Positions 25,945-63,868 of a stretch of 64,000 nt of DNA are shown here, piece after piece. The stretch's first letter is position 1; every line of letters starts with the position of its first letter. The notes below the pieces were generated by a model. That model saw only the letters and a list, made by a program, of their open reading frames with translations. It was not told where the DNA came from and made no database searches. A program made the position numbers and the translations under genes. Source of the DNA: Zygnema circumcarinatum SAG 698-1b (Eukaryota; Plantae; Zygnematophyceae); the NCBI GenBank assembly GCA_037447605.1, contig CM074817.1:620001-684000 (forward strand), read 5' to 3'.

Positions 25945-28900
25945 TCAGTACGGGTACTCGCCGTCGTAGTTCCCGGGGGGGTCGTAGTTGCACGCCCACA
26001 CGGTCCCCCCGTCGTCGCACGTCCCCATCGCGCAGCCCACGCGCGTGGTGGCCCGCCACACCACCTGCACCCACCGCCGCCCTCCCGCACTCGCATGCTT
26101 CAGCCGTCAAGAGATTGAGAAGCAGCGGAGGTCGAGAGCACGAGATGGCTCGCTGTGGCCTCCCTCCCCCCCCCCCCCCTCCCGCCAGCCATCCATCCAT
26201 CCATCCAGACCGACCTGCGTGTAATGCCCGCAGTTGGCCCAGTTGCCCGTGCTGCAGCCGTCCGGGAACACGGCATAGTCGTAGTATTGGCGCTCGCCCA
26301 CCCACGCCGCCACCGCCATGGCGCAGGTGGAGTCGCCGCCGTTGGCGTAGAGGTTCTGGCCGTAGGGGTTGTCCGGCGTGTGGTACATGTCGCCGTTGCA
26401 TCTCCCCTCGCTCGCCAGGAGGTCCACCCAGTCTTGAGCCGCGCTCGCGACTGCTCCGACCTCCATGGCCCCCCCCCACAGTCAATAGCACAACCACAGA
26501 CAGTGCCCCCCACCTTTCATGGAGGACCGACTGCAAAAATAACGTGATGGCACTGGGGTTCAAACTCAGCGGACGTGCAAATGCGATTGGTTCCAAAGCA
26601 TAATCAGTTAATATCAGCGTGCAGAAGGCGATGCCATGCCATGCCATGCCATGCCATGCCTCTCAATTAATCAAGACATGCTCGTTGCCGATGCCCACCG
26701 CGCGCCGCCATGCCGCCATGCACGCGCGAGGCGTGACCGGACGGAATGTACCTGCATCGCTCCACGCGAGGGGCCCGACCCCCACCAGCCCGCGCGCCTC
26801 GTTGTGGCCCGCCAGACAGTCTGCGTGCGCGCCATCTGCACCCGCCATTGCGCCCACATAAAGCGGAGAAAAGGCGCAACTCAGGCGTGCATCTTCGAAA
26901 CGTTTTCAACACTTAATACTCTTGCAGTTTCTTTAACCGGGGTGCTTCGAGCAGGAGGCATCAAGAGGAGAAGTATGCTGGACAGCCACGAGAGTGATTA
27001 TCTTGGAGTCAAAGATTACCCAAAACATAGGATTGTGCAAAAAAAAAAGGGAGAGTCCGTCGATGACTCACTAGATGGAGGAGGTGACGGCAATCGGCGT
27101 GGCGGTGGGGGGCTCTTCCTCATGGAAGGAGGAGGTCTCAATTGTTTAGGCGGAGGAGGACGCTTTGGCAGAGGAGGAGGAGACTTGGAAGGAGGAAGTG
27201 CCGCACACGCAGTTCCTGACGCGATACAGCGACCGTAGCAGGCGGTGTAGCCCTGCGAACAGATGCAGGCGGCCCCGCAGCCATTTGCTTGACACGTGGA
27301 CGAGCTGGGGCAGGTCACCTGGGAACAAGGATCACACACTGCGCGAAAAAGCGCACACAAACTCGGCTTAGGCACTATAAGTTACTTTTCCAATATTCGG
27401 CTCGTCATTCATTCTCTCAGATTACATCAAGAAAAGGTCATGGAGGCAGGTGGAGCTGTGCGGGGAGGAAGTGCCTATACTACAGCAAATGATCTGTGGG
27501 TTTTAACAACTAAAAGGGCGTGAGAAAGGGCTTCACCTTTGCCGGGTGTCGTGCAGCTGATGGAGTACACGCCTGTGTCAGGGCGCAAATCCCTGCAAAA
27601 AGAGACCAGTCATAAGTTCTGAAGGATTGGGCTTTCGACGATAAGCAAGAGGGGGTGGAATTAGTCACAGGGTTTGAGTTTTTTTCCATTTTAACCCCAG
27701 AACTCTAAAAGTATAATCAACTTTGAATCCCCTACCACGCAATCCCGAAACCTTCTCAGACACTACGGGTTTCTGTTGAAGTGTACCCGAATGAGTAGTC
27801 GTAATATTGGAAGTTCGTTGGGTCGGTATTCTCCCAGCCGCCGGGAATTTCTGTCCAGTAATAGCCTACATCCTTGCAGCCATAGCCAGACCAAAACAGG
27901 ATTTTTCCGCAAATGACATGGTTTGGCTTGCCATCTTGCACATTCCATTGGATCTTCATCGATGCCAGGGAGCCACTGATGGGGCTGCTGAGGTTCAGGC
28001 ACTCCATGTTGGGCAGAGGAGCCGTGACCACTCGAGATTCACCGCGGTACGACGTCGCGGAATAAAGGGTTAAGACTGTGCCCACTGTCACCGTTGACGG
28101 ATATACGACAACAGTCCGGTTCACAGGTGGAGCTGCATTAAACATTGAAAACCAGGGTGGCTTTCAGCGTTTGAATAAGAGCATCCAAAGCTAACCACAC
28201 TCCAAACCAATGGCCTTCCATGCCATGCGCGTATGCCTTTCTATCTAGAAACATACTCACGTGGGGAAGCGCGGGTAGCTGGAGGAGATCGTCGAGGTGG
28301 GGGAAAGCGGTTTGGAGGAGGATTCCGTGGAGTGCGAGGGAGAGGTGGGGGAGAGCGGAGCGGAGGAGGTCTGCGTGGAAGAGGAGGTGTCCGAGGGGGC
28401 GGTCCCTTGAGAGGCGGCGGGCGGCGGGGAGGGGAAGGGCTTGGGGCGGTGCACTGCTGGATGGGCGCGATGCAGCGGCCCTGGCAGGCTTGGTAGCCGC
28501 TGTCGCAGACGCAGATGGCATCGCAGCCGTCCGCTCTGCATGTCGATTTAGTGGGGCACTCGATGTTGGAGCATGGCTCGCATACTGCAATCAAGGAGCA
28601 CTTTCCACGCTTCAGAGTGTAACTGGGTTTATTTATTTCCGTTGTGTTAATAACTGCAACTTAAATTAGAAGAAAGAAAACCTGCCCTTGGTGTCTGTAA
28701 GATTTCCTTCTACGTTTTCACCTGGATCGTCGCAGCTTATAGATTGCACGTTTGGGGAGTCACTCAAGTCGCTACATGCACACAAGGAGCACACAAGCCA
28801 GCAGTTGGGTTAAGCGCTGCTGCTCGTCTTGAACTTGCCAAGACCTGGGCAAAGGGAAGTAAATCAATGCAAGAATTGGAAAAAGGGAAAAGATTATATT

Positions 28901-30395
28901 GTGAAGTGATATTCAATCACGCGAAATTATATTTACCACGCAAAAACAGTCGACAATGTCTGTTTAGTAGAAATAGTAAGAAATTATTTATGGAACCCAA
29001 TTTGTATGTCATCTGTCGCTCTACTGCCCATGATTTACATCAGGGCTGTTGCTTTGAACCTGTTTGCTTCAAAATATACGAAAGGTTAGAAGGTACTTCT
29101 CTGTAACCCAATGTCGCTTTTCTTATTGCAGCATGCAAGGACTGGAAATTGATTGTACTGCAGACGGGGATCTATAGTTTTATGGTTGTTGGGGTTTTGC
29201 CGGTTTTAGTAAGTAAAACTTTTCCGTCCAAGGTTTAAAACTTTCTCGTCGAGGCACTAGGAAGAGAAGGCGCACTATCCTATGTCTCTCACAATAGTGA
29301 AAGATGAACATCATGTCTCCTGTACTTCTTATAGAAAACGTTTCGACTGGTTGGAGGGATATGAGACGTGAAGCCTACGAAAGCAATGGTCGATGTTTGA
29401 TGTTGATTGTAGCATGATCGCATGCGAAATCAAATTGGAAAGGCAGACCACCATACGATGAACTGCTGTTTAGCTGTTTTATCGCACGACTGCATATCGA
29501 ACTGCGGGTGTTTGAGTGCTTTCAAGTTCGTAATTTTGGGTGACCCAAAAAGTGATGCCTTTCCCTCCAACCAACAACTTACTCAAACCAGTAATCTTCG
29601 TAGTCGAATTTTGACGGGTCCGCATTCTCCGCATCTCCAGGAATCTCCACGTAATAACCTCCATTGTTTTGCCCGCAAGCTGGGGCAAACCAGAAGGAGA
29701 GTACGCCGCACACCGCGTGGTTGGGTTTGCCATCGTCGACGTTCCACACAACTTGTAGGGAGAGCAAGGAGTTGTTGTACGGCCGGGAGAGCGCAAGGCA
29801 GCCTGGCTCTGGAAGCGGGGCGCGGGTCACCAAAGGAGTGCCGGCGAAGTCGAGTTTGCTGTAGAGCGTTAGCTGCGTTCCTACCACCGCCTTCAAGGGG
29901 CGGCTGACTACCACGTCACTACCTGCACAGTGGAAAGCCAAGGACATGTGTGTTTGTGTGCGTTTCTAGCGAGCAGGCGTGTGTGTCTGAGCGTTAGAGT
30001 GTAGGTGTGTATGTGCGTGCGTGAGAGAGAGAAGAGAGAGAGAGAGAGATGTAGAGAGAGAGAGAGACAGCACACCAGAGGCAGCAAGATGAACAAGCGC
30101 TCCTTCGCCTGTACCCAAAAGCGCGTCCTGCCGCGTGCCCTGCCGCACCCACAGAGAGAATTCAGATTCCCCTGGAGCTGTCACTAGAGGCACAGCCCAT
30201 CCTCTTCCTACCACCATGACGGGGCGGGGCGCTCACCGCCTCCGCCGGGACCGCTACGCGCACCGCCCGCCTCGCGCGCTTTCCGGGCAGCCCCCGCCCT
30301 GCGCCCCCTGGGGGCGCCGCCCCTTCAGCGGGCGCGAGCAGCACGGAGAAGACGAGCGCCATGGCCACGAGGAGCGCCGCGCACCGCCGCGCCAT
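25945..30395 (-). CDS. Modular secreted protein A: SP - [betagamma-crystallin/MiAMP1-like - 10-Cys EGF-like - Pro-rich] x2 - CAP (PR-1-like); 11 exons, 677 aa
   Basis: Exons 30395-30237, 30127-30076, 29922-29583, 28771-28722, 28584-28261, 28132-27787, 27592-27537, 27338-27072, 26835-26752, 26450-26215, 26064-25945 sum to 2034 nt, all GT-AG and in frame. SP MARRCAALLVAMALVFSVLLAPAEG. CAP: [61 protein letters not shown]. Confidence 0.85.
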
Positions 30396-31438: not shown

Positions 31439-34400
31439 TCAGTACGGGTACTCTCCAAGGTAGTTTCCGGGAGGGTCGTAGTTGCAGGCCCACACGGTTG
31501 AGCCGGAACTGCAAGTCCCCTTTGCACAGCCAACGCGTGTGGTGTCCCTCCAGACCACCTGCAACCGCCCAGGGGACCCTTAAGCCTCAAACTTGACAGC
31601 CACTTGACGAATTAGTTTGGGAAGTTTCAGAGGAGGTTTGGCAGGTTCAGGGTGCGGGGTTCAGTTCGAAGCGCGTCACCTGCGTGTAGTGGCCGCAGTC
31701 GCCCCAGTTGCCCGTGCTGCAGCCGTCGGGAAAGATGGCAAGCGAGTAGTACCGCCGCTCTCCGACCCACGCGTTCACCGCCTGCGTGCACGTGGAGCCG
31801 CCGCTGCTGGCGAAGAGGTTCTGGCCGTAAGGGTTGTTCGGCGTGTGGTAAAATCCGCTGAAGCACTTCCCTTGGCTTACAAGGAAGTCCACCCACTGTT
31901 GCGCCGATGCAGCCACTGATCACATCAAAGAAAGCCCAAGGGATCAGGTCAGGGCTTGCCGCAACAAGCAGCAGCAGGTCATGCCATGCCATGTACAGGC
32001 GATCATGCCGCAATGCCATACCATCCATGATCATACAATGTCAAGCAAACCAGAGTCAGCACCACGAGACCAGCGGCCTGGGCAGGCAGTTGTACCAGTG
32101 TCGTCCCAAGCAATCGGACCCACTCCCACCAAGGCGCGCGCCGCGTTTTGGCCGTCCAGACAGTCTGCGTGGGGCCCTGCATCCACCATTGCACAACAAA
32201 AGCACACTTCAGGCTGAATACTGAACAAGACTGGAAATTGCAACAATCCTGTTAATCCCTCGACGGTTGAAGCCCTGAACATCCTACGGAAGCTGTTATA
32301 GGAAGGGTGGAGCAGTAGAAACTCAAAATGCCAGACGAACATGGCAACATACACCTAGACTCTGGAAGAGCCTGTAGTGAGGGATACGTGTAGAAGTGGT
32401 TGTCCTGTAGGGGAGGATGTCTGAAGAGAGACCCAACTCACTACTTACCAGCAAGAGGTGCTGGTGGTGAGGGGCTGGGTGGTGGTGGGCGTCTGGGTGG
32501 TGGTGATGACTTAAGTGGCGGAGGTGGTTTTCTGGGTGGTGGTGAATTTCTTGGCGGTGGTGGTGAAGGTCTCGGTGGCAGCAATACGGGGCTCGGCGGA
32601 GGAGAAGAGGGGCTGGGTGGTGGTGTTGAACTGCTCGGTGGCAGCAATACGGGGCTCGGCGGCGGAGGTGAGGGGCTTGGTGGTGGCGGTAGGGGGCTCG
32701 GTGGCGGTGGTGAGGGGCTTGGCGGAGGCAGTAGGGGGCTCCCCGGAGGTAGTAGGGGGCTAGATGGAGGCAGTAGGGTGCTCGGCGGCGGAGATGAGCG
32801 GCTGGATGGAGGTGGGCGTCTGGGTGGTGGTGGTGGCTTTCGTGGCGGAGGTGGTTGTTTGGGAGGTGGTGAATTTCTTGGCGGTGGTGGTGAGGGGCTC
32901 AGAGGTGGTGGTGAGGGGCTTGGCGGTGGAGGTACGGGACTCGGCGGCGAAGGCGAGGGGCTCGGCGGCGGTGAGCTCGTCCCTGGAGGCGGAGTAAGCT
33001 GCGTTGGCGGAGGAGAAGGGGACTGTAGCGAGAAAGGAGGCGGCGCACACGGAGCTTCCGCAGCAATGCAGGTTCCATAGCAGGCTTTGTAGCCTTGCAC
33101 GCAGGTGCACAAAGCACCACAGCCGTCTGCTTTACACGTGGACAGGCTGGGGCAGGACACTTGGGAGCAGGGATCGCACACTGCCCCATCAGCCCACATG
33201 CACACAAAAGGTCAGCTCAGCTCCCTCTTTCGACATGCAGCAACTCATCCATGTTCTCACATTGCAGTAAAACAAGGAAACAGAGGCAGGTGGGCCCTAT
33301 GGAGAGTGACGCGCTGGTGTAGTGGTCATACTCTTAAAAATTTGAAAGAACGTGGGAAAGCAGAGAGCAAACTGCACCTGTGCCAGGTGCGCTGCAAGTG
33401 ATGGAGTACGTGGTTTTGTAGTCTGTCAAGTTTCTGCAAAAAAAAGACCAGGTTTTGAATTTAACATCCTGACCCCGGGAAACATATAGGCGGGCATGAA
33501 TTCCTTTTCCCACCCCGGAATTTTATAGTTTTCATCCAAAACTCAAAAAATCCCCTCTTTCGATGCTCTACCTCCTCGAAACCCAAAAAGCTCACCTGCC
33601 AACATCAAAGGCTGCTCAAGAGGTGGACCTAATGCACTTCTAGTATTACATGCTTGAACCTAACATACTCACTAAGAATCAAGAAATTGACAATACCTGA
33701 AATTTGAGTCACGGAAATCGAATCTCGTGGGATCAGTAGCTTGAAAGCCACCGGGAACTAACGTGTAATAGTAGCCCCCAATGCAGCCATATTCGGCATA
33801 GAACTCAACGCTTCCACACATGACGTGGTTGGGCTTGCCGTCCTGCACATTCCAATTGATTCGCATCGACTGCAGGGAGCCGCTGATGGGGCTGCTGAGG
33901 TTTAAACACTGTTTGTTGGGCAGAGGAGCCGTGAAAGTCACAGATTGGCCGCCATAGAAAGGCTCGGTAAAAAGGGTCAGAACTGTGCCAACAGTTACAT
34001 TTGATGGAAACACGGCGACGGTTCGGTTGACAGGTACAGCTGCACAGAGATCGTCGATAAATGGTACGGTTAAGGTTCGAGAAAATGTACGCATCAAGAA
34101 CCAGGCGCAGAGTCAACTGTCACTGATGTCAAGTAGCAGTTTAGATATAGAAACATGTTTAAAATACAGAGGCACACTCACGTGGAGGGGGTCTAGGAGG
34201 AGGAGGACTCCGAGGAGGGGGGGCGGGGGGGGGGCTGCTTGGAGGAGGGCGAGGGGGGGACGTGGGAGGACTGAGAGATAGGGAGGGAGGGAGGGAGGGA
34301 GAGGAAGGGGCGCCACATTGCTGCGCGGAGGGAAGGCAGCTGCCCTGGCAGGCCTTGTACCCCGTGTCGCAGACGCAGTTGGCATCGCAGCCGTCTGCCT

Positions 34401-35311
34401 GACAGGTGGAGCTGCCGGGGCAGGTGACGTTGGAGCAAGGCTGGCATACTGCGCAAGGAGCAACCCTCTACGGTCTCAATGTATGGATATTTATATGCAG
34501 CTTAGATTGTTGCGAAGCTGTTGGGTTCGCTATACACAAAACAACAATGACAACTAATAGAAGGGATGTGCCATTGGTGAGAGGCTAAAGACGAGGTGGT
34601 CCACCTGGCCTGTACGAATCGCATTGGATGGACTGCACTTGCGGGCTGTTGCTCAGATCTCTGCGTGCATACAGGCGGCACCCAAGGAAGCACGTGAGGA
34701 AGAACGGCTCCTGCATCGGCGTGGGCTCAAAGCACTAGACAACGGCAACTCCCTGTTCTACAATTTAAACAAACGAGGATCGCGGCATGCAAAAACCCGC
34801 TTGTTCATTGGACAGGCAGACCGCCATAAGCTCAAGTGTCGTACCGCACGACTGCACATCAAGCTACGTGTGTTTGATCGTTTTCAAATTTGTATTATTT
34901 GGAGGCTCGAAGAGTAATGCCTTTCTCTACGGCGCACAACTTACTCGAACCAGTAATCATCGTAGTCGAAGAACGTGGGGTCGGCATTCTCCCAGCCGTC
35001 GGGAATCTCGACGTAATAGCCTCCGTTCCACCTCTTGCAGTCGGCGAGGTACCAAAAGGTGACGCGCCCGCACACCACGTGGTTGGGCCGCCCGTCGTCC
35101 ACGTTCCAGACCACCTGCAGGGAGAGCAGCTTGCCGCTGTACGGAGCAGGCACGCTCAGGCAGCCACTCCCGGGGAGCGGCCCGCGCGTCACCCACGGCG
35201 TGCCGCGAAAGTTCTTCTTGCTGAACACCGTCAGCTCCGTCCCCACCACCACATTGGAGGGGTACGAGACGGCCACCTCTGTGCCTGCACGACGCGATCG
35301 GGTACGTGCGT

Positions 35312-35391
<80 letters not shown>

Positions 35392-35803
35392 AGGAAAGAG
35401 AGAAATGGAGCAAAGAGAGTAAGGCGCCGCGAGCGAGGAGGGGAGAGGACGCGCACCAGGGGCAACAACGCGCGCTAGGTCCACTCCCATCCTCAGCCGC
35501 AGACTCTGCCCCGCCCCAAGGAAGACGCGCCCCCTCTGACCGTCAGACGCCCCGCCGCAGGCCCCCCCTCCTCCCTCCCAAGGCACGTGGCGGACGAGGC
35601 TCTCACCTCCTCCGGCGGAATGCGGACCACCGCCGGCTTCCCGGAGAGCCCTGCACGTGGCGGCACACGCCAGCGGTCAGGCTCGCCCCACCGACAAGAG
35701 CGGAACAGTGAGCGTGTGACACGTGGCGGCGGGGCTCACCGTGGACATTGCAGACGAGCAGCGCGCCTAGAACCACGAGGAGCGCCGCCGCTCCGCCCGC
35801 CAT
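31439..35803 (-). CDS. Modular secreted protein B: SP - [crystallin-like - EGF-like - Pro-rich] x2 (second stalk about 190 aa) - CAP; 12 exons, 795 aa
   Basis: Exons 35803-35740, 35650-35607, 35505-35457, 35284-34945, 34660-34605, 34448-34182, 34039-33697, 33433-33378, 33180-32449, 32176-32096, 31915-31680, 31558-31439 sum to 2388 nt, all GT-AG and in frame. SP MAGGAAALLVVLGALLVCNVHG. Ends [15 protein letters not shown]. Confidence 0.85.
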
Positions 35804-38832: not shown

Positions 38833-38842
38833 NNNNNNNNNN
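38833..38842. other. Assembly gap (10 N) beside a poly-G run; further 10-N gaps at 51887-51896, 61719-61728 and 63859-63868
   Basis: Literal N runs, each adjoining G-rich or poly-G tracts. Confidence 0.99.
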
Positions 38843-40941: not shown

Positions 40942-50809
<9,868 letters not shown>

Positions 50810-51981
50810 GGCTCCCTCTCCCCCTTCCTCGCTCGCTCCTTCCCTCCCTCGCTCCCTCGCTTCCTCTCCGCCCTTCACCTCCACGGCCGTATCCGCGCCA
50901 CTGCGATGGCGCCGCCGTATCTACATACGGCAGGCCGCAAGCGACAAAAGACGACACACTTGTACTGTCATACCGAAGATGGCGCCAATCGCCATGTGGC
51001 CGTATTCCTGACAGAGGCGCTTGCCCGCGCACACTTTCCGGCAGGCCTGTGGTCGCTCAAGCTGAATTTGGAGTTGCGTCTCGCGTCCGCCAATCAGCGC
51101 CTGTCGCACGGCGAGGCACAGCTGGCCAGCCGCGGCCGTACAGAGCATACGGTCTGATGCACGAGACTGGACGAAGCGGGCAGGCGGTTGTGTACGGTCG
51201 CGTTTGTCGGTTTTGGGTGGATCGACTCGCGGATATTATCTGTAGGGACTGTCAGACCTAGAAATCGCGAGGATCGCTGGAGGGATTAAGCGGCCATCGG
51301 GGATATAACGGAACGAGTACTCGGCATGGGGCGGGCAGGGCAACGAGGAAGGACGGCGCCCAGTATCAATACGTTGTTTCTGACGAGGATTTCTTTCCTC
51401 GTTCGAATTTGTTGTCTGATCATGCCTTGGTGATAATAGAACCAGTTGAGCGGAACTGCGCGGCGACGCACGGAGCAGAACGCGCCGCTGTTGGCTGCCC
51501 CGCTGCAGCGTGCAACTGGGAGGTCTGTTACTGAACTGGCATGAATCAGTTCGGATTGTTTGTTTGTAACAAAAATCGTCAACTAAGGTCGGACCACGGG
51601 ATCGCCAACCATTGGACAACCCTTTGGATGGCAATGGTTGGAAAGCCAGTGGTTGGCAGGTGCCAACCATTGTATGTCGGCAAACATTGGATGCCAACCA
51701 TTGGCAACTGTCCGCCCTGCGCCCAACCGTTCCCGTGCGAGCCGTCACCGCCACTTGTCACGGTCTGGCGCGGCCCGCGCGGGGACGGCTGCAGGGTGAC
51801 GGCTGGCAGCGCGAAGGGCGGGAGGGGAAGAGAAGCAGAGGGCGCGCTGAGGCAGGGAGGGAGGGAGGGAGGGAGGGAGGGAGGGGNNNNNNNNNNGGAG
51901 GGGAGGGGAGGGGAGGGACAAAAGGATGCAGCTTCCGTGCGCTCAGTTCTGTATTTAGGGTTTGCCGCACGCAGACCCGCC

Positions 51982-61098: not shown

Positions 61099-62511
61099 GC
61101 TGCCGCTGTTACAGGGAAGAGGAGAGAGAATAATGGCCTGATGCGTTGGAGAGTGAGCTTTATCTGCTGACATTCATCCTATACTCGATGTGCAACCGTT
61201 CTAAAGTCCGTCACATATAGCCACCCCGTTTGTAAGATGTGGTCGAATTTTCCAGTGTCAGTCTCTATTTTACATTTGTGATCACCGGTAGCGCAGTTAT
61301 TAGGAGGGGCGGATAGTCTTATGGCGGGGAACCGTTTTATCGTGTGATTCCCTGGCGTTGAAGGACGAGAGCCTGGAGAGATGAGCCATATAGCGGGCTA
61401 TAGACTCTCGACTCCATGGCAGTGGCAGCAAGGCGAGCCTGCATAGATGCGGCATAATGGGAGTTGCGGTTGTGATAACTGACCTCTTTTTTGTGCTTGT
61501 GCGTGCCTCCAGTCGGGAACCTCTCTAGTACAAAATTTCGTTTCTACGGTTATGCTGGATTCCAAATGGAAGCAAATTGAAATCAAGAGTAGTCACGTCG
61601 TGTGCGGTTCGCGATTGAATCGCTCTTTGAGTACTATGCTCTGGCGTGGCCTAAACCATGATAGTTTAACATACATGCCTGTTCTTGTCAGTAAAGGGGG
61701 GGGGGGGGGGGGGGGGGGNNNNNNNNNNGGGGGGTGGTTAAACTTGAAAACATCGACATTGGAATTAAGTCGAAGAACTTTGTATTTCGCTGTTACTGCC
61801 CATGCCGTGGAAATACGAGTACCAACTTCGAACTTCAAAATTGTTTAGTTTTTATCAGTCTAAAATCTCCCTGTAGGTGCAAGCCTGTGGCCTGTAAGTA
61901 TAGATTCCAGAACGTCTACCGAACTTGAGTTGAAACCAACTAAGGATGGTCGATGCATCACGGAAGCCACGCGTATTGCAACGATGACGTCGTGTTTTCT
62001 CAACCAATCCGATGCTGCAAACCTTTTTCGAAAAGGTAAGGATGGTTTCAAAACAAACGATCTGCACGGCGGTCATGGCGGGTCATGGAGGGTCATGAAA
62101 GCACTGGCGATGGCTTCATATCTTCGTGGGAGCACCGGGGGGGGGGGGTCACGACCCCACTCGAAAGATGCCGTCGCAAAACTCGAAACCTGAGTTTGCA
62201 GTTTGCAGTTTGCGCTTTCTGGTCCGCCCTGTTAAGTAGCGTGACGTCACGTCCGGCTCGGATGCGACTGCAGGTGCTCGGAATCTTCGAAAAGGTCCAC
62301 GCCACGTGGCACCTCCTGCTGACAGACTTGAGAGTGACACGTGACAGATCGTGCGCCGTCGGACAAGGTCCAGATCCTGTTCCCGTGGCCGCTAAACTGC
62401 CGAACGAAAACTGTCGCGTCTGACGGCGAACTGGAGAATGCCGCATGGAACGGAAGTCAGCGCCCCTCCGCCTCATGGAGGGAGCCGGCAGCTGTCCCTG
62501 AGCATCTCTGT

Positions 62512-63772: not shown

Positions 63773-63868
63773 GTGGGTCCGTTTTCGTAACGCTTTCTGT
63801 GTCAGAAAAAAACAGCAGAAGGAGTTGTGACGAGTGAAGTTACCTTAGTCGACCTCATNNNNNNNNNN

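Follow-up and report, generated by a model that had tools for sequence, protein, structure and literature searches.

Plant PR-1 is normally a single-domain protein; it is a classic marker of plant immunity, and its mode of action is still debated. In the 64,000-nucleotide stretch of the Zygnema circumcarinatum SAG 698-1b genome analyzed here (the window), three neighboring genes join CAP/PR-1 domains to a repeated module, termed X, and the question is what kind of domain X is and what it could add to the proteins that carry it. An earlier note, made from the sequence alone, had listed five copies of X, and all five were recovered at the same coordinates by tblastn, using two of the copies as query, and by splice sites in the DNA. 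The window holds exactly five copies, all on the minus strand (E 1e-25 to 1e-48, 41-64% identity; next match at E > 0.4). They are paralogous (43-76% identity to each other) and are distributed as one copy in gene A and two each in genes B and C (Table 1). Each copy consists of a main exon and an 18-codon mini-exon; according to the splice sites, all five main exons start in phase 1 and end in phase 2, and the mini-exons end in phase 1. For copy c5, the acceptor AG directly before 45998 preserves phase 1, while two AGs farther upstream would lead into a stop. Given this acceptor, the intact frame and invariant residues, and the signal-peptide exon of gene A, we did not adopt the reading of c5 as a pseudogene.

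Table 1 Features of the X-bearing genes in the window (positions of the window).
Feature	Position	Strand	Gene and content	Basis or remark
X copy c1, main exon	27787..28132	-	Gene C, second X module; Greek key 1 and strands a2, b2, c2 of key 2	
X copy c1, mini-exon	27537..27592	-	Closing strand d2, D-L-x5-V-x-S-I-x-C	
X copy c2, main exon	29583..29922	-	Gene C, first X module	tblastn, splice sites, alignment A1
X copy c2, mini-exon	28722..28771	-		Splice sites, alignment A2
X copy c3, main exon	33697..34039	-	Gene B, second X module	tblastn, splice sites, alignment A1
X copy c3, mini-exon	33378..33433	-		Splice sites, alignment A2
X copy c4, main exon	34945..35284	-	Gene B, first X module	tblastn, splice sites, alignment A1
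X copy c4, mini-exon	34605..34660	-		Splice sites, alignment A2
X copy c5, main exon	45674..45998	-	Gene A, sole X module	tblastn, splice sites
X copy c5, mini-exon	45355..45410	-		Splice sites, alignment A2
EGF-like Cys-rich and Pro-rich exon after c1	27019..27381	-		Open-frame limits, exon ends approximate
EGF-like and Pro-rich exons after other X copies	28244-28660, 32444-33211, 34162-34467, 44216-45217	-		Stop-to-stop frames
CAP/PR-1 exons	25948..26905	-	Gene C	Pfam PF00188, frames; terminate GEYPY-stop
CAP	31442-32354	-	Gene B	Pfam PF00188, frames
CAP, three tandem units	40945-43995	-	Gene A	Pfam PF00188, frames
Exon 1, signal-peptide-like N-terminus	35740..35803	-	Gene B	Phase-1 GTGAGC donor
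Exon 1, signal-peptide-like	50746-50809	-	Gene A	Counterpart of gene B exon 1
Start ATG	30395	-	Gene C	

The order of parts in the window proteins is signal peptide, X, EGF-like knot, Ser-Pro(n) extensin-type linker, and C-terminal PR-1/CAP domain, with an EGF-like/Pro-rich module after every X copy (5/5). These Cys-rich exons gave no Pfam match in the window; at the equivalent position, Closterium homologues show EGF-type Pfam matches. The CAP exons of the window score 22-28 bits against PF00188, above the cutoff of 21.1, and in full-length homologues the CAP domain is detected at E 1e-20 (Pfam) and matches PR-1 P14a (1cfe) and 9lyt at E 1e-30. From the signal-peptide-like first exons, the SPPPP runs in the open frames of the X-bearing proteins, the CAP domains, and the homologue architectures, these proteins are predicted to be secreted, extracellular wall proteins.

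The sequence of X is not readily placed in an existing family. The window copies gave no match at E ≤ 10 to the Pfam models of crystallins (PF00030, PF08964), Inhibitor_I36 (PF03995), or MiAMP1, and, whether the query was a single copy or the five-copy profile, searches of PDB and Pfam returned only chance matches for X (E 0.6-0.9); MiAMP1 (1c01) was not returned from PDB at E ≤ 10 by the five-copy profile (alignment A1). Among 27 family members, two reach Crystall_3, at E 0.2 only, and none reaches Pfam MiAMP1 at E ≤ 1. A PDB search with a wider alignment (A3) was dominated by the CAP columns and was uninformative on X. With hhalign, an X-only profile aligned to crystallin units over Greek key 1 with a probability of 82% (E 1e-5); the five-copy profile reached a probability of only 19.5% against one crystallin-repeat protein. 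A further sequence link to the crystallins is that the five-copy profile, run against 1.84 billion representatives, drew in repeat proteins assigned by Pfam to Crystall/Inhibitor_I36 (P0013, E 2.8e-15), through summed matches to the a1-b1 hairpin.

Relatives were collected by an exhaustive search of 1.84 billion representatives with the five-copy profile. About 40 were recovered, and all the named ones are "hypothetical" proteins of Zygnematophyceae in which X is fused to CAP/PR-1, EGF-like, extensin-like, or EXORDIUM parts (architectures X-EGF-CAP, X-Pro-CAP, and Phi_1-Pro-X). On a contig of another species, the same split into main and mini-exon is followed by Pro-rich and CAP exons. A word-based search with residues 66-185 of P0012 brought back the query alone, so the family list depends on the exhaustive profile search. 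Two proteins found by that search, P0036 (fibronectin type III) and P0042 (YadA), were discarded as repetitive false positives with multi-stretch matches. Our literature searches found no account of X, or of any protein fusing CAP to a crystallin domain, in streptophyte algae; beta/gamma-crystallin repeats are mentioned, in passing only, for chlorophyte receptor kinases.

In order to examine the fold, two AlphaFold2 models were used: one of the c1 main exon alone, without strand d2 (pLDDT 88.2, pTM 0.78), and one of the complete domain in a natural Closterium homologue, P0032 (pLDDT 86.5), whose identity to the window copies is only 24-25%. The alignments behind both predictions were shallow (27-28 sequences). 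They were compared with 48,161 PDB representatives using VIA-align, and Foldseek was also used. For the c1 main exon, 16 of the 17 best rows are beta/gamma-crystallin-superfamily domains, and the crystallin matches have Z 5.2-6.1 and rmsd 1.9-2.9 Å over 62-68 residues. Re-alignment of its top Foldseek matches gave 76 chains with Z of at least 5, and the best 50 of these are all crystallins save two fungal GH29 fucosidases. The complete domain placed 28 of its 29 best rows in the superfamily, the exception being iridovirus ORF158L (3rj2, Z 5.6). Ten chains reach Z ≥ 8, all of them crystallins, including gamma-B crystallin (1gam_B, Z 8.9, 81 residues aligned, rmsd 2.2 Å, whole target covered), Ciona 2bv2 (Z 8.9), and spherulin 1hdf (Z 8.8); unrelated folds begin at Z 4.4. 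The Foldseek comparisons of P0032 with 2bv2 and 3hz2 gave a target-normalized TM score of 0.72 at a probability of 0.99-1.00, and residues 144-150, the strand equivalent to the mini-exon, fall within the crystallin superposition. As the Foldseek E-values never went past 0.02 and the window exon itself has Z of only 5-6, the fold assignment leans on the consistency of the match lists and on the distant Closterium homologue. With this basis, the models support a double Greek-key beta/gamma-crystallin fold for X, a wedge-shaped sandwich; the double Greek key proposed in the earlier note was thus not refuted by the predicted structures.

The motifs of X tell the two Greek keys apart. In key 1, the crystallin hairpin Y/F/W-x-x-x-x-Y/F-x-G is present in 5/5 copies as Y/F-x4-Y/F-x-G (e.g., LTLYSATSYRG; Y23-x4-Y28-x-G30 in c1), and a conserved Ser of the GSLAS type follows in all of them (S57, invariant in the main exon). 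The hairpin and its downstream Ser, which the earlier note had read as a Greek-key signature, thus stand, but the spacing of about 27 residues given for them does not: Tyr to Ser spans 34 residues, and G30 to G53 spans 23. In key 2, the hairpin is altered to W/Y/L-x4-C-x-(D/Q/G/R), with a Cys replacing the second aromatic residue (alignment A1); c5 has L instead of W, and among the five copies only c3 and c5 retain the hairpin Gly, as do most homologues. The motif said to close key 2 in the mini-exon does so, as S-I-x-C is found in 5/5 copies and the part of the model that corresponds to the mini-exon forms its last strand, d2. The Ser of S-I-x-C is invariant in the five copies (alignment A2), and together with S57 it keeps the strand-d Ser in both Greek keys. 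Three cysteines in the main exon and the S-I-x-C one in the mini-exon make four conserved Cys, which probably form two disulfides. The aromatic-rich "insert" noted previously is, in the secondary structure of the model, no separate insertion; it consists of strand c2 of key 2 together with an extended b2-c2 loop. The copies contain 11-15% aromatic residues and carry a net charge of -1 to -9, and none of the known sugar-binding motifs was recognized in X. The Ca2+ motif N/D-N/D-x-x-S/T-S, which precedes strand d in both keys of microbial Ca2+-binding crystallins, is kept in neither Greek key of any copy (0/5; alignments A1 and A2): the corresponding region of key 1 reads SGSLAS, NNSLLS, SGSLQS, SGKLLS, and NGSLLS, with A, L, or Q at position 5, and the N/D pair is absent from key 2. 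Judged by these degenerate motifs, a Ca2+-binding crystallin was rejected.

Compared with known crystallins (1gam, 2bv2, 1hdf, and 1nps; Z 8.2-8.9, rmsd 2.2-2.4 Å, 79-86 residues, target domains covered in full), X shares the double Greek key and, in key 1, the hairpin and conserved Ser, in the region of the profile-profile alignment. It differs in length, since the b1-c1 and b2-c2 loops and a linker that joins the keys (W-N-V-x-D-G-x-P-N-H) add some 30-40 residues, as well as in the Cys of key 2 and its four conserved Cys, in lacking the Ca2+ motif and any Pfam crystallin match, and in occurring in plant-lineage wall proteins next to PR-1. MiAMP1 of Macadamia (1c01) is likewise a secreted, disulfide-braced crystallin-type domain of the green lineage, and it superposes on P0032 over 76/76 residues (Z 6.8, rmsd 2.4 Å). 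Its aromatic-x4-Cys hairpin occurs in both Greek keys (PMC7886984), whereas X has it in key 2 only. Williopsis killer toxin (WmKT, 1wkt; Z 5.3 with P0032) and a Streptomyces antifungal protein (1gh5) share the superfamily fold, but with Z of 3.0 and 3.1 for the window exon they are the weakest superfamily matches; they are free toxins without sequence similarity to X. The likeness to MiAMP1 and killer toxin suggested by the earlier note is therefore real in so far as both appear in the match lists of both models, but they score below the classical and microbial crystallins (Z 8-8.9). The plant lineage thus contributes a new beta/gamma-crystallin family, with a motif pattern between classical crystallins and MiAMP1.

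Several functions known for this fold have to be weighed. X could be an antimicrobial effector of the MiAMP1/killer-toxin type, acting with PR-1 on fungal or bacterial envelopes, for example by blocking beta-glucan synthesis. The MiAMP1 and WmKT superpositions agree with this, as does the W-x4-C of key 2, a reported MiAMP1 signature (PMC7886984); moreover, an antifungal role and this fold are common to MiAMP1 and WmKT (PMC4695807), X is joined to PR-1/CAP, and the young copies change rapidly. We nevertheless regard it as unlikely: crystallins outscore both toxins, Pfam MiAMP1 is matched neither by the window copies nor by the homologues, and key 1 carries a crystallin-type rather than a Cys-type signature. 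In addition, MiAMP1 is a free basic peptide of 76 residues with three disulfides (PMC4695807), whereas X, with about 125 residues, is about 50 residues longer, has 4 Cys instead of 6, is acidic to neutral, and is tethered within large, extensin-linked multidomain proteins. The net charge also makes a cationic antimicrobial peptide unlikely. A structural or Ca2+-dependent wall module of the Protein S, spherulin 3a, or DdCAD-1 type would have the task of stabilizing or cross-linking the wall, or of holding cells together in a Ca2+-dependent manner, without specific recognition. Matches to Protein S (1nps, Z 8.2), spherulin 3a (1hdf, Z 8.8), and DdCAD-1 (2b1o, Z 5.7), the location in extensin-type wall proteins, and purifying selection on the oldest copy pairs would fit such a role, which we still rate as quite improbable given the loss of the Ca2+ motif and a rate of change above that of introns, unexpected for a purely structural module.

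It is highly improbable, finally, that X is a protease inhibitor of the SMPI (Inhibitor_I36) type directed, in the wall space, against metalloproteases that microbes secrete. The idea draws on the five-copy profile, which retrieves repeat proteins assigned by Pfam to Crystall and Inhibitor_I36 (P0013, E 2.8e-15, among 1.84 billion representatives), on Inhibitor_I36 clusters among the protein-language-model neighbors (score 0.82-0.86), and on fast evolution, which is typical for inhibitors opposing pathogen enzymes. However, the proteins so retrieved are crystallin repeats of a generic kind, matching several related Pfam models at once, the profile match arises from summed matches to the a1-b1 hairpin only, no X sequence reaches PF03995, and no SMPI structure is present among the fold matches listed.

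The divergence of the copies had been taken as a sign of diversifying selection, with X described as far more divergent than CAP. That comparison is confounded, because the CAP copies that are nearly identical arose by recent duplication (genes A and B); in the matched pair of genes B and C, identity is 62-65% for X and 68-83% for CAP. Matched older copy pairs have dN/dS of 0.24-0.25, i.e., purifying selection, and only the youngest pair, c4-c5, looks diversifying (dN 0.160, dS 0.135, dN/dS 1.19, a ratio based on about 43 differences and not significantly above 1). In this pair, the X exons differ at 53/389 sites (13.6%) and the flanking introns at 18/397 (4.5%; Fisher p 9e-6), while the adjacent EGF-like exon shows 0/148 differences; with X exons changing at three times the intron rate next to an identical EGF-like exon, X is the changing part of these proteins. 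The changes lie on both lineages, with 12 replacements on c5 and 5 on c4. Instead of positive selection, patchy gene conversion could also account for the excess in the exons, either by homogenization of the flanks or by import of a diverged X.

Relaxed constraint on a decaying c5, or such patchy conversion, without any diversifying recognition surface, is a possible, if doubtful, account of the fast change. It would explain the larger share of replacements on c5, its lack of five N-terminal residues, the alternative acceptor that it requires, the change of W to L in key 2, an exon dS (0.135) above the intron divergence, and a short c5 patch (alignment columns 258-280) that matches c1 and c3. 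On the other hand, the c5 frame is open, with none of the four Cys or of the invariant residues of the family lost, the signal-peptide and CAP exons of gene A are intact, the c4 lineage changed too, and neutral decay would lead to an exon rate equal to that of introns instead of three times as high.

Taken with the fold and the motifs, these observations make it reasonably probable that X is a new, divergent family of the crystallin superfamily, a mobile extracellular module of wall proteins with an inferred binding role. X comprises about 120-130 residues forming the two Greek keys, with loops longer than those of the 80-90-residue classical crystallin domain, and a fixed exon pair between phase-1 introns encodes it. 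It would be a mobile part of secreted wall glycoproteins; in Zygnematophyceae it is also found after EXORDIUM/Phi_1 domains. From its context and the roles of other crystallin-fold members, X is a putative recognition or adhesion module whose most likely ligands are carbohydrates or molecules on the surface of other cells or of microbes, and it would anchor or orient the CAP domain within the wall. The aromatic-rich exposed loops are the candidate surface that would diversify between young paralogues. A bolder version is improbable, namely that, in the algae closest to land plants, X serves as the variable head for recognition in an extracellular surveillance or mating-recognition system based on PR-1; wall-anchored, extensin-linked PR-1/CAP proteins would then be carriers of an X diversifying under positive selection to bind surfaces of microbes or partner cells, and the single-domain PR-1 found in land plants would have descended from these modular proteins in stripped-down form.

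For the inferred binding role, two crystallin-like accessory modules of extracellular proteins that act on glycans offer a lead: the C-terminal domain of a fungal GH29 alpha-L-fucosidase (4ni3 residues 500-585), the best match of the window exon (Z 6.1; 7.6 for the complete domain), and the mucin-binding X409 of E. coli StcE (3ujz, 9gsm; Z 5.6), which binds clustered O-glycans through CH-pi contacts (PMC12518865). At 8-17% identity to X, they are a lead to its function and not evidence of it. The overall design resembles that of yeast Pry3, a cell wall protein with a CAP domain and a Ser/Thr-rich linker (PMC7340583), in that a wall CAP/PR-1 domain is carried on a long glycosylated linker; Pry3 differs in having neither a crystallin-type nor an EGF-like module. 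In the window and in other Zygnematophyceae, PR-1 is thus linked to a previously unannotated crystallin-type module that gives it a testable partner, and a fold and a name are now available for the approximately 40 relatives. The fast change of X in the youngest pair is what one would expect of a surface that meets other organisms.

A tblastn comparison of two reading frames with the whole window returned exactly five X-related stretches, all on the minus strand (E 1e-25 to 1e-48, identity 41-64%), and no other match with E < 0.4. Reading of the DNA at the copy edges showed that canonical AG acceptors and GT donors bound the exons. Each copy consists of a main exon of 325-346 bases (entry phase 1, exit phase 2), an intron of 195-811 bases and a mini-exon of 50-56 bases that brings the frame back to phase 1. 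The five copies lie where the earlier note had placed them, with the same splice sites, including position 45998 for copy c5, where only the AG directly before it keeps the frame. An alignment of the main exons contains 31 invariant positions; these include three Cys, the stretch W-N-V-x-D-G-x-P-N-H and a hairpin signature (Y/F-x4-Y/F-x-G) with a Ser further on. The mini-exons all share L, S-I-x-C and P. The five-copy observation is thus real, far beyond chance.

Minus-strand open frames, matches to the Pfam CAP model (PF00188) and a search for 5' exons defined three tandem genes carrying these copies: C, B and A. Since they combine a signal peptide, X, EGF-like/Pro-rich parts and CAP, the encoded proteins look, judged by sequence, like secreted, extensin-linked wall glycoproteins with PR-1 domains at their end. 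The long Ser-Pro(3-5) runs between the globular modules are of the kind typical of linkers in extensin-type hydroxyproline-rich glycoproteins. For gene C, no phase-1 GT donor joining the signal-peptide-like start to the c2 exon was found, and its 5' end may comprise an additional small exon or another start.

Coordinates of genes and features in the window
Feature	Position	Strand	Description
Gene C	about 30395 to 25948	minus	signal peptide, X (c2), EGF-like + Pro-rich, X (c1), EGF-like + Pro-rich, CAP
Gene C start	30323-30395	minus	signal-peptide-like, MARRCAALLVAMALV...
Gene B	35803 to 31442	minus	signal peptide, X (c4), EGF-like + Pro-rich, X (c3), EGF-like + Pro-rich, CAP (layout as gene C)
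Gene A	50809 to 40945	minus	signal peptide, X (c5), EGF-like + long Ser-Pro(n) region, three near-identical CAP units
Gene A CAP/PR-1 units	40945-43995	minus	three in tandem, period 1139 bases
Ser-Pro(3-5) runs	44216-45217; 32444-33211	minus	between globular modules
EGF-like Cys-rich exon, gene B; gene A	34320-34467; 45070-45217	minus	
Repeat in gene A intron 1	46006-50306	minus	~4.3 kb almost pure (TA)n + (CT)n dinucleotide repeat, GC 13-19%
Scaffold gaps	38833-38842; 51887-51896; 61719-61728; 63859-63868		four runs of 10 N

The c1 main exon, folded without its mini-exon from a 28-row alignment, gave a model with pLDDT 88.2 and pTM 0.78. Foldseek ranked Protein S and Flavobacterium and archaeal crystallins first, weakly (E 0.75-2.5). 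In a structural alignment against 48,161 chains, 16 of the 17 top rows were beta/gamma-crystallin-superfamily domains (Z 5.2-6.1, rmsd 1.9-2.9 A over 62-68 residues); MiAMP1 reached Z 4.3 and WmKT Z 3.0. Re-examination of the Foldseek matches left 76 chains with Z >= 5, the best 50 of which are all crystallins except two fungal GH29 fucosidases. The complete domain was modelled from a natural Closterium protein, P0032, which comprises a signal peptide, X and EGF and shares only 24-25% identity with the copies in the window; its pLDDT was 86.5. This model matched 1gam_B (Z 8.9, 81 aligned, rmsd 2.2 A), Ciona 2bv2 (Z 8.9) and spherulin (Z 8.8); the ten chains with Z >= 8 are all crystallins, aligned along the whole length, and superfamily members fill 28 of the first 29 rows, the exception being iridovirus ORF158L (3rj2). 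Unrelated folds appear from Z 4.4 down, and Foldseek gave a target-normalised TM of 0.72 (probability 0.99-1.00). Residues 144-150 (S-V-G-C), equivalent to the mini-exon strand, lie within the crystallin superpositions, so the mini-exon encodes the closing d2 strand.

These models, which are predictions from shallow alignments, show X as a crystallin-type double Greek-key module, the fold that had been proposed from sequence; it is carried on a phase-1/phase-1 exon pair in putatively secreted PR-1 wall proteins. MiAMP1 and Williopsis killer toxin were said to share the fold, and both do match the P0032 model (Z 6.8 over 76/76 residues, and Z 5.3), below the crystallins. The aromatic-rich "insert" exists as a segment but is no separate insertion: it corresponds to the b2-c2 loop and strand c2 (pLDDT 94-96 in the c1 model).

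When 1.84 billion representative proteins were scored with a profile built from the five main exons, only 56 matched at E <= 1e-3, none below 1e-30. About 40 are true relatives (identity 23-41%); every named one is a "hypothetical" or "unnamed" protein from Closterium, Mesotaenium or Netrium (all Zygnematophyceae), and the others come from read or metagenome assemblies. Nine among the checked matches are multi-repeat proteins called Crystall/Inhibitor_I36 by Pfam; the best, P0013 (E 2.8e-15), owes its score to many weak a1-b1 hairpin matches summed. An X-only profile matched crystallin units cut from these proteins with 82% probability (E 1e-5), the match spanning the four strands of Greek key 1, and language-model neighbours, taken as leads only, include Crystall, I36 and Syncollin clusters. 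X reached no Pfam crystallin or MiAMP1 model, and no Pfam model covers it in the window copies or the homologues. It differs from the known families in its four conserved Cys and its longer loops (about 30-40 extra residues); in key 2, W-x4-C, a pattern described for MiAMP1 (PMC7886984), replaces the second aromatic.

Homologues show X-EGF-CAP, X-Pro-CAP and Phi_1(EXORDIUM)-Pro-X architectures, and in a 1.8-kb contig from another organism X is likewise divided between main exon and mini-exon, with Pro-rich and CAP exons after them. The EXORDIUM/Phi_1 (PF04674) proteins with a C-terminal X behind a Pro-rich linker (Pfam-confirmed for P0004, P0005 and P0034; read from sequence for P0009, P0015, P0021 and P0043) come from Mesotaenium, Netrium and other assemblies. 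The crystallin fold is well known, as is the crystallin-type antimicrobial peptide MiAMP1 in plants. In the literature we found no account of the X family, of its hybrid motif pattern, of the Phi_1-Pro-X architecture, or of X being fused, in algae related to land plants, to PR-1, EGF-like, extensin-like and EXORDIUM parts; database entries list the members as hypothetical.

By Nei-Gojobori estimates, the matched old pairs c1-c3 (65% identical, dN/dS 0.24) and c2-c4 (62%, 0.25) show purifying selection. In genes B and C, which carry these pairs, the CAP exons are 68-83% identical (dN/dS 0.14-0.36); compared like with like, X thus exceeds CAP in divergence by only a little, not by far as the earlier note had it. 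Its suggestion of diversifying selection fits the youngest pair, c4 (gene B) and c5 (gene A), and not the old ones: dN is 0.160 and dS 0.135 (ratio 1.19), and in the aligned A/B region 53/389 sites differ in the X exons versus 18/397 in the two flanking introns (Fisher p 9e-6). Replacements number 12 on c5 and 5 on c4, with 8 left unassigned. In this small sample, the pattern is as positive diversifying selection would give; decay of c5 or patchy gene conversion, the latter favoured by one short c5 patch that matches c1/c3 at the nucleotide level, is a possible but rather unlikely source of the fast change. Genes A and B agree at every site of the EGF-like Cys-rich exon (100% identity, 0/148 sites differ), which sits between X exons differing by 14% (upstream) and a Pro-rich part differing by 19% (downstream).

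We infer that X probably serves as a binding module, because of its place at the N-terminus, the exposed end of the extensin-tethered PR-1 proteins, its aromatic content of 11-15% with acidic to neutral charge, the restriction of fast change to X in the young paralogues, and the binding of sugars or surfaces by other fold members, such as the C-terminal domain of the fucosidase and X409, a mucin-binding module. The charge, size and tethering of X and the absence of the Ca2+ motif N/D-N/D-x-x-S/T-S from both keys together make a direct MiAMP1/WmKT-like toxin improbable and a Ca2+-dependent structural module a little more so, and we give an SMPI-like inhibitor hardly any chance beside the proposed binding role.

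Intron 1 of gene A spans 4.7 kb, and the (TA)n/(CT)n microsatellite takes up 4.3 kb of it; in gene B, the orthologous intron has just one short (CT)n run ahead of its acceptor. The gene A CAP units share 98-100% identity among themselves and with the one CAP that gene B has, which suggests an internal duplication of very recent date, gene conversion or an assembly effect.
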